From NCBI RefSeq assembly GCF_006345805.1, contig NC_042998.1:104656001-104720000 (forward strand): DNA of 64,000 nucleotides, written 5' to 3'. Of the stretch, positions 31,342-45,940 are shown piece by piece; position 1 is the first letter of the stretch, and every line of letters starts with the position of its first letter. Below the pieces are notes generated by a model. The model did no database searches, was not told the DNA's origin, and saw only the letters and a list, made by a program, of their open reading frames with translations. The position numbers and the translations under genes were made by a program. The DNA is from Octopus sinensis. Its lineage: Eukaryota.

Positions 31342-31464
31342 CATAAAATTCATCTTTCCAGCCATATCTACCATCTGATTTCTTCGTGCAAATTCGAGTA
31401 TGACAGGGTCTTGATCCGTTAACTCTCGAACCAGGGGCATAACATGTACGAGAGTGAAGACATC
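31342..31464 (-). CDS. host-gene exon, 4-Cys module: GCLHSRTCYAPGSRVNGSRPCHTRICTKKSDGRYGWKDEFY(G)
   Basis: Acceptor ttgtaacttctag|GA, donor ATG|gtatgt, 123 bp, phase 1-1, open frame. Confidence 0.85.
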
Positions 31465-32911
31465 CTAGAAGTTACAAAGACAAATATGTATTTATAGTTG
31501 CACATTCATACGCAGACACACACACACACACACACACACACACACAACACACAACACACACACACACACACATACACACACACACACACACACACACACA
31601 CACACCACACACACACACACACACACATATATATGTATATATGTATACTCCACCAAAGTTGACTGAGCCCTTTATTATTTCGAGGTCAATAAAATAAGTA
31701 CTAGTTAACAACAGAGCTCAATATATTCGACCTAAATCTCGTTCTAAAATTTCAAACCAATATACATTATATATATGTGGTGAGGACTAATGGCCTAGCA
31801 GTCATAACATCATGATTTCAGTTCCTAGATCACATGATGCGTAGTGCTCTTAAGTAAAACACTTCATTTCACGTTGCTCCGCATCCGCCTCGACGCCTGA
31901 TACGCGGTACATCGTGTACCTGTTCAGGCAACATCGAGTTTGAAGAGGTGAGAGATAAAGTGGTAAAGAGAAAAAGAGGTAGAGGAAGAAAAATAAAGGA
32001 AAGAGATAGAGGGAAAGGGAGAGAGACAGAGAGTGTGTGTGTGTGTGTAAGAGTGATCGAACTGGTTATCTGAATTTGTAAGCGTGATCGAACTGGATAT
32101 CTGAATATGTAAAAACATATTTTGATAATTCAAAGTTGCACTGAAAGTTAACTCATCACTTGCTGGTTGTCATATTCAAATATGCAGCAATCGATACACG
32201 TACACATTCATTAGCTGACACAGACACACAGTGTGCATGCATACATCCTGACGCCACCGTATGCACACATACACATATACACTCAGTTGTTCGTGAAGGT
32301 CAACCACAGAGAAAACTTCTCTTTCTGTCTGTCCGTCGGTCTGTCTCTTTCACCTTCTCTTTCTTTGTATATATGTATATATTGACGTGTGTTTGTGTGT
32401 GTACGTATGTGAGCGTGCATAGGACACCTATGATGAGCAGTCATATAATAAACAACATTCTTTTACAATGGAATATAGAAAAGAATGTTTAATGATATAA
32501 AAAGCTGAGCAACTGCCAGTTCCCGTTCTGATTTTCAATTATTAAATAAAATAGTCCTCCTTCTTTCCAGATGTCACTCCCTAAATCAACAAGAGACGGA
32601 GAGAAAGAGTTTGAGAGAAAAAAATGTGGAGGATGAAAGAAGGATAGATAGATAATAGAGAGAGAGAGAGAGAGAGAGAGAGAAAGAGGGGAGAGAAATA
32701 GAGAGGGAATACAGAGAAGTGATACATACAGAGAGACAGAATGAGGCAGACAGAATAAGGGGTAGTGAGAGAGGGAGAGAGAAAGAGAGAGAGAGATGGA
32801 ATACAGAGAAGTGATACATACAGAGACAGAATGAGGCAGACAGAAAAAGAAGGGGTTGTGAGAGAGAGAGAGAGAGAAAGAGAGAGATTGTAAAATAATA
32901 TTCTAACATAC

Positions 32912-33034
32912 CAATAGATTCATCTTTCCATTCATATCTACCATCTGGTTTCTTCATGCAAATTCGAGTATAACAGGGTCTTGATCCTTCAACTCTCGAA
33001 CCAGCGCGATAACATGCATGAGAGAGACGACATC
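32912..33034 (-). CDS. host-gene exon, 4-Cys module: GCRLSHACYRAGSRVEGSRPCYTRICMKKPDGRYEWKDESI(G)
   Basis: ttctag|GA ... TTG|gtatgt, 123 bp, phase 1-1. Confidence 0.85.
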
Positions 33035-33535
33035 CTAGAAGTTACAAAGACAAATATGTATTTATAGATAGATAGATAGATAGATAGACAGAGAGAGAGA
33101 GAGAGAGAGTACATCAATGTTTACAAAATAAGGACATAAAAAAGAGTTCAATATATCATGATTTACTAAAAAATTGCTTCTAATTAATATTAATTAGGTT
33201 AGCTTCTATACCGAAAGTCGGAATTCATTTAAGAACAAGATGGAGGGGAGAGATAATAACATAATTGGGAATTTATATAATTATGTGAGTTAGAACTTCT
33301 CATTGAAGTAATATAGTGAAGTTAAGGTTTATATGATAAAATGCAATATTTGCTATTAAAAAATATTAAAAATATAGTTTGTTATTAATATAATTAAAGA
33401 AAAAGTTTGATAAACAAATTAACAAGAAGTTAAAATACGATTCATATTCCTAATTATATTAGGAATATGAAAGAGAGATGGGGTAGTGAGAGAGGAAGAC
33501 AGAGAGAGACGGTGTAAAGTAATATTTTAACATAC

Positions 33536-33634
33536 CAGTATATTTCTTTTTCCAGATATATCTACCATATTGTGTCCTAATGCAGGTTCCATCAAAACAT
33601 TTCTTACTAATTGTCGAGCCAACACCATAGAATT
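33536..33634 (-). CDS. degenerate or variant module exon: (E)FYGVGSTISKKCFDGTCIRTQYGRYIWKKKYT(G)
   Basis: Donor CTG|gtatgt as in the paralogues. Retains YxxGS, C-x4-C and GRY.W. Weak acceptor tcttttctaaaag, 99 bp, open frame; first two Cys absent. Confidence 0.45.
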
Positions 33635-42590: not shown

Positions 42591-42794
42591 TGTAAAAAGC
42601 AAAATAAAATCATTGATGAAATGCTGAATTACTCATGAACATTACTTCGAATATATAACATTACTTTGTATATAGCAAATGTGTAGCACAAGAAAATGTT
42701 TATAACATACTACGTATTTCTATAGGAGTATATAGACAAAGACGAAAATGATGTCAGCGCGGAACCCAAGCATTACTGCACTTATATCCAATAC

Positions 42795-43143
42795 TAAATC
42801 ACTGAACGAGGTATAAACAGTAACTGCACGACAGGTATATTTGCCATCTCTATATGGCTAACCACTAAGGGTGGGTGTTACTGTAGCTTGTAGCCCCAGG
42901 AGAACATCTTCTCCAGCTGGCTTTAGGCACACTTTCTGTGCTCTTTCGTCATTTGCAAAGGGAGATCATCCTTCCCTCGTCAACTATGTGATACGCATGG
43001 ACCGCAGTTTCTGGTTCTTGACCCGTTATCAGCGTACGACAATCACCTGTTTTTGATGAAAGGAGTTCCCAATACAAATATTAATAACCTTTTTCCAGTA
43101 ACTATTCGTCACTGATCTTGAAAAAGTGCATACAAGCAATAAT
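42795..43143 (-). mobile_element. ~350-bp hammerhead-bearing repeat, one complete monomer
   Basis: Homologous to 49810-50072 and to 50087-50242 joined with 55221-55431. Confidence 0.85.
42988..43046 (-). ncRNA. type I hammerhead ribozyme, degenerate (core CUGAUAA, stem I mismatch)
   Basis: rc: GTGATTGTCGTACG CTGATAA CGGGTCAAGAACCA GAAAC TGCG GTC CATGCGTATCAC. Confidence 0.55.
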
Positions 43144-45817
43144 AGAGGAGGGGTGTGTCGATTAGATTGACCTCGGTACGCAACAGGTGCTGAGTTTTTC
43201 GACACCGAAAGGATGAAAGGCAAAGTTGACCTCTTCGGAATTTGAACTGTAAAGACAGACGAAATACTGCTAAGCATTAGCAATATATTTCGCTTGCATG
43301 ATCCGATGCTGTTTGCCCATGTCCAGATTGGAGTATTCGGGAAATACTGTTCGCCAGCTGGAAACGACTAAGGAGGATTCCGCAGCTTTCTTCTCCACTA
43401 GCCCCACCCAATGCACACATGCAACCAAAATGATGTTCCTAATCGCTAATTAATACTACAGAGAGAGACGTCCCTAGAAAGGCTTCCAAACCATTTTCTT
43501 CTTCTTCTTCTTCTGCTTCCTCTTCTTCAACTTTTTCTTCTTTTTCCTCTTCTTCTTTAATTTTTTCTTCTTCTTTTTTTGCTTCTTCTTCTACCTCTTC
43601 TTCTTTTTCTTTCTTCTTCTTCTTCTTCTCCTTTTTTCCCTTCTTTTTCCTTCTTCTTCTTCTTCTTCTACTTCTTCTCCTTTTTTCCCTTCTTTTTCCT
43701 TCTTCTTCTTCTTCTTCATCTTCTTCTTCTTCTACTTCTCCTTTTTTCCTTCTTCTTTTTCTTTCTTTCTTTCCTTCTTTCTTCTACTTCTCCTTTTTTC
43801 CCTTCTTTTTCTTTCTTTCTTTCTATTTCTTCTTCTTTTTCTTTCTTTCTTTCCTTCTTTCTTCTACTTCTCCTTTTTTCCCTTCTTTTTCTTTCTTTCT
43901 TTCTATTTCTTCTTCTTTTCTTCCCCTTCTTCTTCTTCTTGTCCTTTTTCCTCCTTCTTTTTCTTTCATTTCTTTCTTTCTTCTTCTTCTCCTTTTTTCC
44001 TTCTACTTCTTCTTCTTCTTCTTCTTCTTCTTCTTCTCTTTTTTCCTTCTTTTTCTTTCATTTCTTCTTCTTCTCCTTTTTCCCTTCTTCTTCTTCTTCT
44101 TCTTCTTCTTCGTTTTCTTCTTCTGTATTTACTTCCTGCTATCTATTGCAAATCATGGTGTGGAGGACGGGGAGGTCCTCGTGCAAATTGCCGTACTGCC
44201 TTCCTTACACTTGCATTTCGTGGCCATCTTTCATGTTTGCTCTCTTCGAAGCAAATTTTCGAAGATTTTTCAAAGCAAAAAGCTTTCTGCAAAAAGCTCG
44301 AAAAGAGGTAAGAGAAAACTAGGCCGCTTGCTATTCATGGACGTCCTGAAGCTATACAAAAAAATAATCGTGGAAGAACTAAACAGTTTAGTCCAGTCTG
44401 CAGATTTTATCCAATGATATTCAAAAGGAGTTTGGACTCTCATAACGTGTTGCGATTGTGATGAGAAATGGAAAGCTTACGAAGACAGATTGGTGAAATG
44501 AAGGTAATTGAACCTCAATCTAGCTACAAATACCTGCCTCAAGGTAGAGGGAATCCAACGCCACGGCATGAAGGAAAAACAAAAAGAGAGTACCTGCGGC
44601 GAGTGAGAAAAATATTGACTTCAAAGCTGAATGCCAAAAAGAATGTTAGCAATAAACTCACGCCAGTCCATCACAGCGTTACTCATTTTTGCCAGCTGAG
44701 TGAACTGGAGCAACGTGAAATGAAGCGTTTTGCTGAAGAACACAACGCGTCGCCCGGTGCAGGAATCGAAACCAAACTCTTACGATCATGATGCTGACAC
44801 CCTAACCACTAAGCCACGCACCTCGACAAGCTTAAGTATTAACTGAATTGTTTTCCTAAACGTCCGACAATATTTCCTATGACTGGATACTGAAAACTCT
44901 AGAAATAGGCAAGATCTTTTCTGTAGCTTTTATCTTCGACGTAGTTTGCTAAGATAGTCATTTCCACAACGACGGGGTAATACAAACAAATAAAGTCTAC
45001 ATAAGCTGCCGACTTTCCAAGGGATATCTCTTGCTTTATAAATACTCTTCCACTTGCTTGTGAACCGAATATAACAGGGGTCAGCTACGAATTACAATAC
45101 AAAATGTATGTATATATGTATGTATGTATGTATGTATGTATGTATGTATGTATTATTTATGTATGTATCTATCTATCTATATCTATCTATCTATCTATCT
45201 ATCTATCTATCTATCTATCTATCTATCTACCTGTCTCTTTCTGTCGGTCTCTCTGTCTGTCTCTTTCACTTTCTCTTTCTTTGTATATATGTATATATTG
45301 GCGTGTGTTTGTGTGTGTACGTATGTGAGCATGCATAGGACACCTATGATGAGCAGTCATATAATAAACAACATTCTTTTACAATGGAATATAGACAAGA
45401 ATGTTTAATGAATTAAAAAACTGAACAACTGCCAGTTCCCGTTCTGATTTTCATATATTAAATAAAATAGTCCTCCTTCTTTCCAGATGTCACTCCCTAA
45501 ACCAACAAGAGACGGAGAGAAAGAGTTTGAGAGAAAAAGAGGTGGAGAATGAAGGAAGGATAGATAGATAAATAGACAGAGAGAGAGAGACAGACAGACA
45601 GACAGATTGAAAAAGAGAGGGGGAGAGAAAGAGAGAGGGAATACAGAGAGACAGAATGAGGCAGACAGAGTAAGGGGTAGTGAGAGAGGGAGAGAGAAAG
45701 AGAGAGAGAGAGAGAGAGAGAGAGAGAGAGAGAGAGAGAGAGAGAGAGAGAGAGAGAGAGAGAGAGAGAGAGAGAGAGAGAGAGAGAGAGAGATTGTAAA
45801 ATAATATTCTAACATAC

Positions 45818-45940
45818 CAACGTTTTTCTTTTCCCAGGAATATGTACCATATGATGTCTTCCTGCAGGTTTGTTTATGACAGCGGACTGGTAATTGAACT
45901 ATCGAACCAGCGGGATAACATCTACCGGAGTAAAAACATC
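45818..45940 (-). CDS. host-gene exon, 4-Cys module: [41 protein letters not shown](G)
   Basis: tgtatctttcag|GA ... TTG|gtatgt, 123 bp, phase 1-1. Confidence 0.88.

Follow-up and report, generated by a model that had tools for sequence, protein, structure and literature searches.

Two described systems come closest to the locus considered here. In the conotoxin superfamilies, a conserved signal peptide is followed by a hypervariable mature region with a fixed cysteine framework, and introns are conserved within a family and across species while the exon for the mature peptide diverges; in that exon (exon 3), the non-synonymous (Dn) and synonymous (Ds) rates are both raised (PMC3862624). Zonadhesin, a fast-evolving sperm-egg adhesion protein, carries in muroid rodents 9-24 partial VWD (D3p) domains that are encoded by two-exon cassettes, with 20 extra in the mouse (PMC9275260). 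In this work we examined a 64,000-nt stretch of octopus DNA, the whole of which is called the window below. It carries part of a gene for a cysteine-rich repeat protein in which five copies of one exon (lettered A to E) differ from one another more than their own introns do, and almost entirely by amino-acid replacements.

The family of the window gene resembles conotoxins in its conserved signal peptide and hypervariable mature region, its fixed cysteines and its exons that outpace their introns. As in other accelerated secreted proteins with a cysteine scaffold, the rate of non-synonymous change (dN) exceeds that of synonymous change (dS) and the exons are more divergent than the introns. 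That such accelerated exons are known from toxin genes, as the initial annotation of this region had stated, is documented for the conotoxin superfamilies (PMC3862624). Unlike conotoxins, however, the diverging units of the window are tandem exons of one multi-module gene and not separate single-toxin genes, and the synonymous rate of the recent copies is not raised as it is in conotoxin exon 3. The likeness of the octopus gene to conotoxins is one of sequence pattern. For the exon amplification, zonadhesin is the closest structural analogue, as both genes show lineage-specific intragenic tandem amplification of cassettes for cysteine-rich extracellular domains. The octopus gene differs in phylum and in its cassette, which is a single exon for a 41-residue module with two disulfides rather than two exons for a partial VWD domain of ~120 residues. 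The phenomenon is therefore familiar, and what is new is the phylum, the orphan family, the undescribed module and the single-exon cassette.

The five exons (Table 1) share the donor GTATGT and near-identical splice-site contexts, and all are of phase 1/1, with two bases of a Gly codon at the start and one at the end. The module frame is open in 5/5 copies and the remaining two frames are interrupted by stops. Each exon encodes 41 residues with the pattern C-x5-C-Y-x2-G-S-x7-C-x4-C-x5-G-x-Y-x-W, and 14 of 42 positions are invariant among A-E: G1, C2, S5, C8, Y9, G12, S13, V15, C21, C26, G32, Y34, W36 and G42. These include the four Cys, Y-x-x-G-S, G-x-Y and W that had been listed as unchanged in the initial annotation. 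Self-BLAST, repeat families and a five-way alignment place each exon in a tandem duplication unit of ~1.5 kb in which CT-rich, GATA and CATA microsatellites are also present, and the exons fall into two groups, A/B and C/D/E. A hidden Markov model (HMM) built from the five exon peptides located two further repeat copies on the same strand, X1 and X2.

Exons A and B differ in 13 codons (17 nt), resulting in 13 amino-acid changes; D and E differ in 15 codons (20 nt) with 15 changes, and C and D in five codons (5 nt) with five changes. By the method of Nei and Gojobori, the synonymous and non-synonymous differences are 0.5/16.5 for A-B, 0/19 for C-E, 0.5/19.5 for D-E and 0/5 for C-D, with ~26 synonymous sites available in pairs A-B, C-E and D-E. 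Our recount thus returned every number that had previously been counted by hand for A-B, D-E and C-D, with an amino-acid change in every differing codon. The identity of introns 40832-41010 and 45401-45579, noted earlier over 179 bp, also holds and forms part of a 328-bp identical run between the introns of D and E.

Over all pairs, the exons show 5 to 43 differences per 123 nt (p-distance 0.04-0.35), as compared with a p-distance of 0.004-0.08 (0.4-8%) in alignable intron sequence free of microsatellites. Per site, non-synonymous differences outnumber intron differences by a factor of 2.6-11, whereas dS in the close pairs A-B, C-E, D-E and C-D is 0-0.02 and matches the intron divergence of 0.02-0.04. 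In Fisher tests of non-synonymous against intron differences, p was 6e-6 for A-B, 4e-9 for C-E and 1e-12 for D-E; the values for all pairs other than C-D lie between 6e-6 and 1e-12, and C-D, which had already been judged insufficient on its own, is not significant (p = 0.06). The columns that vary among A-E fall at codon positions 1, 2 and 3 in the numbers 21, 21 and 9. In a sliding window, the peak of divergence is bounded by the splice sites, and similar values are reached only where microsatellites are misaligned.

The five exons were also fitted with a one-ratio Goldman-Yang codon model (implemented in our own code) on the tree ((A,B),((C,D),E)). The estimated omega (dN/dS) is 7.2-9.7 across equal, F1x4 and F3x4 codon frequencies, a value averaged over 40 codons that include the invariant scaffold, and omega = 1 is rejected (likelihood-ratio statistic 16.8-23.3, p = 4e-5 to 1.4e-6). 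Diversifying selection is supported as the sole reading that fits a dN far above dS together with a dS close to intron divergence. The initial annotation had proposed diversifying selection on a binding surface. Its first part is upheld by the formal test (omega 7-10, p <= 4e-5) and by an independent replication in the comparison with an orthologue described below; the binding surface is still putative.

A search of 1.84 billion representative proteins with a profile built from the exon peptides returned only six hits. The three best come from octopus and are 240-282 residues long; in each, a signal peptide and a short linker precede a tandem row of five or six modules of the type encoded by exons A-E. 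The family comprises LOC106869870 and A0A0L8HLW9 of Octopus bimaculoides, LOC115222431 and LOC115232515 of O. sinensis, and a hypothetical protein of O. vulgaris, all annotated as 'uncharacterized'. Pfam gave no domain above threshold in single exons, concatenated exons or the family proteins. When the five exons were joined and used as the query of a word-indexed homology search, there was no match, so the gene is unannotated in that collection. Literature searches by locus and accession identifiers, including the supplements of O. vulgaris salivary-gland and skin-mucus proteomics, yielded no mention of these identifiers.

Exons A-E and X1 align without scaffold gaps to 23 repeats from five family proteins. 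In these 29 sequences G1, C2, C8, G12, C21 and C26 are invariant, and the HMM matches have E-values of 1e-13 to 1e-16. The window exons thus carry the tandem ~41-residue repeat of the family, G-C-x5-C-x3-G-x(6-8)-C-x4-C, and follow its organization of one repeat per symmetric phase-1 exon, being 123 or 111 nt long with AG/GT borders and a split Gly codon.

The genomic locus of LOC106869870 (64.6 kb of chromosome CM046602.1, assembly GCA_001194135.2, termed L001 and numbered locally) encodes a signal peptide and six repeats, with exons that map one-to-one on the repeats. Read in reverse orientation, the window follows this locus in the same order of segments, with 84-93% nucleotide identity, from position 63894 to 9889 (L001 13932-57398), which identifies the window as carrying the LOC106869870 orthologue of another Octopus species. 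Non-coding DNA is ~12-16% diverged between the two. Exon 2, repeat 1 and X2 have positional orthologues in L001, and these orthologous exons are 57-73% identical in DNA sequence. The two loci differ in that only one of the six repeat exons found in L001 by the HMM is of the repeat-2 type, whereas the window holds five intact copies and one truncated copy of it. Exons A-E are therefore extra copies of the repeat-2 exon within a single gene, two of them (A and B) downstream of X2 and three (C, D and E) upstream. The term paralogous exons, as used in the initial annotation, is apt for duplicate copies but not if separate paralogous genes are meant.

X1 is an older, strongly diverged copy that keeps the cysteine spacing of A-E, C-x5-C-x12-C-x4-C. 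X2 is anchored on both sides (33811-33627 to L001 44165-44348, and 33454-33214 to L001 46088-46335) and is truncated at its 5′ end, where the loss of ~80 bp took away the acceptor together with the codons for the first two Cys. Two Cys are left. X2 retains its donor GTATGTTA, and splicing at a cryptic acceptor, AAAAG, would preserve the frame. The ends of the deletion fall at the short similar motifs ATTCTAT and ATGCTAT. A signal peptide (MRxxLLL...SQ) is present in all family proteins, and synteny would place signal-peptide exon 1 ~3-4 kb past the high-coordinate end of the window. The HMM found no exon for repeats 3-6 in the window; these exons probably lie before its start. That repeat 3 was missed may be due to DNA-transposon-like open reading frames (ORFs) near the place where synteny predicts the next repeat exon. 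Such ORFs, a Cys/His-rich N-terminal one and transposase-like fragments, occupy 2145-5042 on the minus strand. A weak HMM match upstream of the O. bimaculoides gene (L001 7174-7314) was dismissed as it has only two Cys.

Table 1. Exons of the repeat gene and duplication units in the window.
Feature	Position	Strand	Description
Exon A	31342-31464	minus	123 nt, repeat-2 type, duplicated, AG acceptor/GT donor
Exon B	32912-33034	minus	123 nt, repeat-2 type, duplicated, AG acceptor/GT donor
Exon C	39533-39655	minus	123 nt, repeat-2 type, duplicated, AG acceptor/GT donor
Exon D	41157-41279	minus	123 nt, repeat-2 type, duplicated, AG acceptor/GT donor
Exon E	45818-45940	minus	123 nt, repeat-2 type, duplicated, AG acceptor/GT donor
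X2, truncated repeat-2 original	33536-33634	minus	HMM match; positional orthologue of the single O. bimaculoides repeat-2 exon
X1, repeat-1 exon	49609-49719	minus	CMMNGICQVYGTRIESASRCLQYICEERGNVRREVT; HMM match; orthologous to L001 20974-21096
Exon 2	61415-61462	minus	phase 1/1, product VIKAPCDVPNSVNRVV; orthologue of LOC106869870 exon 2 (L001 15330-15720 alignment)
Duplication unit A	30093-31767	minus	exon and intron with CT, GATA and CATA microsatellites and SINE-like (short interspersed nuclear element) tRNA-derived sequence
Duplication unit B	32318-33160	minus	shorter unit; repeat families, five-way alignment
Duplication unit C	38091-39793	minus	repeat families, five-way alignment
Duplication unit D	39823-41457	minus	chimeric: exon-proximal part nearest C, distal intron nearest E
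Duplication unit E	44401-46117	minus	repeat families, five-way alignment

The comparison with orthologues from a related species, which the initial annotation had called for, repeats the excess of exon over flank divergence in O. bimaculoides. Exon 2 differs at 20 of 47 aligned nucleotides and has 14 gap columns (a net length difference of 12 nt), as compared with 10/165 differences in its upstream and 7/85 in its downstream flank. X1 differs at 30/111 nt and by a 9-nt indel, with dN 0.43 and dS 0.10 (dN/dS 4.4), against 5/80 upstream and 7/55 downstream. For X2 the figures are 39 of 98 aligned nucleotides, and 17/190 and 9/67 in the upstream and downstream flanks. Between the species, exon 2, repeat 1 and repeat 2 therefore differ by 43%, 27% and 40%, and the flanks by 6-13%. 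That X2 is ~40% different while its flanks differ by 9-13% indicates that it evolved fast before, or despite, its deletion. The comparison shows that the whole region coding for the mature protein evolves several times faster than neutral sequence. Conservation among paralogues is much higher in the signal peptide (16/20 and 11/20 residues identical) than in the mature region (~35% identity overall). The O. vulgaris and O. bimaculoides orthologues of a sister gene are 73% identical.

Taken together, these observations make it likely that the repeat-2 exon was amplified to five copies in one lineage and that the copies were then diversified by positive selection, perhaps driven by a binding partner. 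The gene encodes a small secreted protein in which a signal peptide and a short linker are followed by tandem modules of ~41 residues, each with two predicted disulfides and encoded by one symmetric phase-1 exon. Tandem segmental duplication, probably through unequal crossing-over at the flanking microsatellites, amplified the repeat-2 exon in this lineage, leaving five intact copies in the groups A/B and C/D/E and a truncated original, X2. Positive diversifying selection then probably replaced most residues outside the scaffold, with retention of the Cys and Gly residues and of Y9, S13, V15, Y34 and W36, while synonymous sites and introns drifted neutrally and introns were re-homogenized in part by crossover or conversion. 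A changing partner, such as a molecule from prey, from a pathogen or from a mate, would favour more modules and more varied ones. We infer that the modules serve as extracellular binding units.

Amplification and selection of this kind are compatible with an array of alternative exons that are used singly or in subsets to give a repertoire of proteins, with selection acting on the diversity of that repertoire, although we regard this use of the exons as unlikely. All five are 123 nt long, of phase 1/1 and in near-identical splice contexts, so any subset would be in frame. Among the predicted isoforms of LOC115222431 (240 and 200 amino acids) and the 280-amino-acid protein of O. vulgaris, the differences amount to exactly one or two complete repeats. 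The tandem arrangement of variant exons of the same length and phase is shared with Dscam-type clusters, but the docking/selector complementarity of those clusters was not found: between 28 and 62 kb of the window, no site of at least 12 nt outside microsatellites is complementary to 10-mers common to units A, C, D and E. Strict mutual exclusion of exons A-E is unlikely because family proteins carry several repeats in series, four to six different ones in each, and cassette-type skipping of repeat exons in the family is plausible. A further possibility, likewise unlikely, is that variable inclusion of the exons produces a combinatorial repertoire of secreted multi-module binding proteins, and that selection for its breadth drives both the amplification and the high omega. 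The gene would then be a splicing-based generator of diversity akin in spirit to Dscam or the mollusc FREPs, and the single hint in this direction is the skipping of whole repeats in the predicted isoforms of the paralogue.

The history of the introns bears on whether the exons might instead be old, with introns that look young only through repeated conversion or crossover and with exon-covering tracts purged by selection for diversity. Sites were taken as informative if a single one of C, D and E departs from the other two. In the stretch that begins 57 nt upstream of the exon and ends ~320 nt downstream of it, 28/37 informative sites set E apart from C and D, and in the next 335 columns 10/10 set C apart from D and E. 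It follows from this switch in grouping that unit D is chimeric and that unequal crossover or conversion has exchanged distal introns, with the breakpoint inside the microsatellite tract. This switch, the 328-bp run shared by D and E, and the comparison of A with E (upstream segments ~83% identical, downstream introns 92-96%) speak for this reading. Homogenization does inflate some of the exon/intron contrasts, notably that of D-E against distal intron. However, in the exon-proximal block, which shares the genealogy of the exon, C and E differ at 19/123 exon and 12/220 flank positions, and D and E at 20/123 and 14/218, so that the exon is still ~3 times more diverged than its flanks (p = 0.003-0.005). 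Old exons would also hold synonymous differences, whereas 0-0.5 are seen on ~26 sites and omega = 1 is rejected, and intron homogenization cannot strip synonymous differences from exons. Furthermore, the contrast recurs between species at exon 2 and the repeat-1 exon, two comparisons that conversion among paralogues does not affect and cannot explain. Of the 17 exon sites that part E from the C/D pair, the outgroup copy A shares the base of E at seven, that of C and D at six and neither base at four, which shows that substitutions built up on both the E and the C/D branches rather than in one conversion event. Old exons are thus improbable. The caution in the initial annotation, that gene conversion could exaggerate the contrast but would leave the missing synonymous changes unexplained, proved sound on both counts in these mosaic introns (C with D near the exon, D with E distally).

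Instead of selection, mutation targeted to the exons could be at work, either as hypermutation of a local kind or through error-prone repair. Such a mechanism has been suggested for toxin exons that are hypervariable, and it would account for divergence that is sharply confined to exons and for several codons with two changes. The joint rise of Dn and Ds in the exon for the mature conotoxin is in keeping with such a process (PMC3862624). In the window, however, synonymous and third positions should then change too, whereas third positions vary least (9, versus 21 and 21), dS in the close pairs stays at the intron level and the scaffold codons are untouched, making targeted mutation a very improbable cause. 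No more credible is decay of five dead pseudo-exons, for which the lack of annotation in the databases searched and the visible truncation of X2 could be cited: drift without constraint predicts omega = 1 and equal exon and intron divergence, not an omega of 7-10 and 2.6-11 times the intron rate, and 5/5 copies keep an open frame, four Cys and AG/GT sites. An assembly artefact, in which collapsed or chimeric units create false differences, is the least credible of all even for a microsatellite-rich region with near-identical 1.5 kb units, since errors would not respect codons, spare cysteines and stop at splice sites, and since the independent O. bimaculoides assembly repeats the pattern at orthologous exons.

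Several points weigh against amplification followed by diversifying selection. The codon model was applied to only five sequences of 40 codons, and multi-nucleotide changes, with 17 nt spread over 13 codons in A-B and 20 nt over 15 in D-E, may raise omega somewhat. The mosaic genealogy of the introns means that intron divergence understates age in places. The gene is also missing among the annotated proteins of the databases searched, and use of the exons is judged from frames, splice sites and the orthologue.

The locus offers an unusually clean, internally controlled case of positive selection, as the copies lie 1.5-5 kb apart in one gene, their own introns supply the neutral rate, and the single-copy orthologous locus supplies the ancestral state. 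It also flags an octopus-restricted secreted family, whose module has no relative in Pfam or the PDB, as a target of diversifying selection that is among the strongest measurable (omega ~7-10 averaged over the module). Such genes usually act at the interface with other organisms or with mates, in venom or saliva, immunity or fertilization, and to our knowledge few of them have been described in cephalopods. Given that the amplification is lineage-specific, the copy number of the repeat is a candidate variable at the level of species or populations.

A structural model of the module was built with AlphaFold on the alignment of 29 repeats; an earlier model from six sequences, with a predicted local confidence score (pLDDT) of 66, was discarded. 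The final model (pLDDT 94.5) has a hairpin of strands 2-4 and 7-9, followed by a sheet of strands 14-16, 22-28 and 34-40, and predicts two disulfides per module. The predicted module is loosely like the small disulfide-linked beta modules of the fibronectin type I (FnI or FN1) and VWC kinds in its hairpin and three-stranded sheet, its two disulfides and its length of ~40 residues. A Foldseek search of the PDB gave nothing significant (E 0.5-2.6). Its best non-significant matches were a sub-module of MUC2 D3 and fibronectin type I pairs, with template-modelling (TM) scores of 0.53-0.60 (E 1.7-2.6 for the FnI pairs), and a sequence-profile search of the PDB returned chance matches only (E ~1). 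Below the Pfam threshold, Fn1_2 was matched by 2/29 repeats (best E = 0.027) and VWC by 1/29 (E = 0.056). Membership of the fibronectin type I family is unsupported, as Fn1_2 lies below its gathering score. The VWC consensus has ten cysteines with C-x2-C-x-C and C-C-x2-C motifs. Membership of that family is likewise unsupported, the octopus module having four Cys and no CxxCxC or CC motif, with VWC below its gathering score. The spacing C-x5-C-x12-C-x4-C also departs from the consensus of both FN1 and VWC. The octopus module is best regarded as a beta module with two disulfides that has not been described before and is loosely akin to FN1 and VWC.

The 28 positions that vary among A-E are spread alike over strands and loops of the model, as expected for a 41-residue domain in which nearly all side chains are exposed. 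Net charge ranges across the modules from +1 (D) to +6 (E). Weak matches to the exon profile were also seen in a repeat of metagenome-derived proteins (HxRICDKKSDGKCxW) and in a mucin-type protein of Owenia fusiformis, there in a VWC-like repeat (CFYNGxFYxPGTxxExxCHxVxC). The Owenia match hints that the octopus module may have descended from a VWC-like module.

Every duplication unit includes tRNA-derived-SINE-like sequence (GGTGCGTGGCTTAGTGGTTAGGG...GGTTTCGATTCC...), with copies at approximately 30140-30260, 38470-38590, 40130-40250 and 44700-44830. A further copy is at 31780-31900, and the O. bimaculoides locus has related copies in two spots. ARAGORN called none of these copies a tRNA gene and found no tRNA genes anywhere in the window. 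Between the units are low-complexity tracts, 37680-38024 (minus strand) and 43484-44322, which are purine-rich/pyrimidine-rich with imperfect 9- and 12-nt periods and as ORFs would read poly-E/K or poly-S/F/L. A second, larger segmental duplication relates 41684-42784 to 48101-49171 (94%) and 42783-43047 to 49806-50070 (96%). The segment upstream of exon D thus copies both flanks of X1 but lacks the 635 bp (49171-49806) that bear X1, which indicates that the repeat-1 exon was lost from this copy or never received there.

Other features of the window are long microsatellites of the types (GATA)n, (CA)n and (CT)n, and reverse-transcriptase ORFs of long interspersed nuclear elements (LINEs). One LINE fragment that encodes reverse transcriptase (ORFs 21502-22266, 22720-23265, 23788-24159 and 24294-24839) contains a direct duplication of 1.75 kb, 21906-23658 and 23778-25530, at 97% identity. 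From their ORFs, on the plus strand, we read 12479-16397 (322, 233, 391 and 247 amino acids) and 52510-54783 (557 and 193 amino acids) as probable non-LTR (long terminal repeat) retrotransposons that lie in introns of the gene on the opposite strand.

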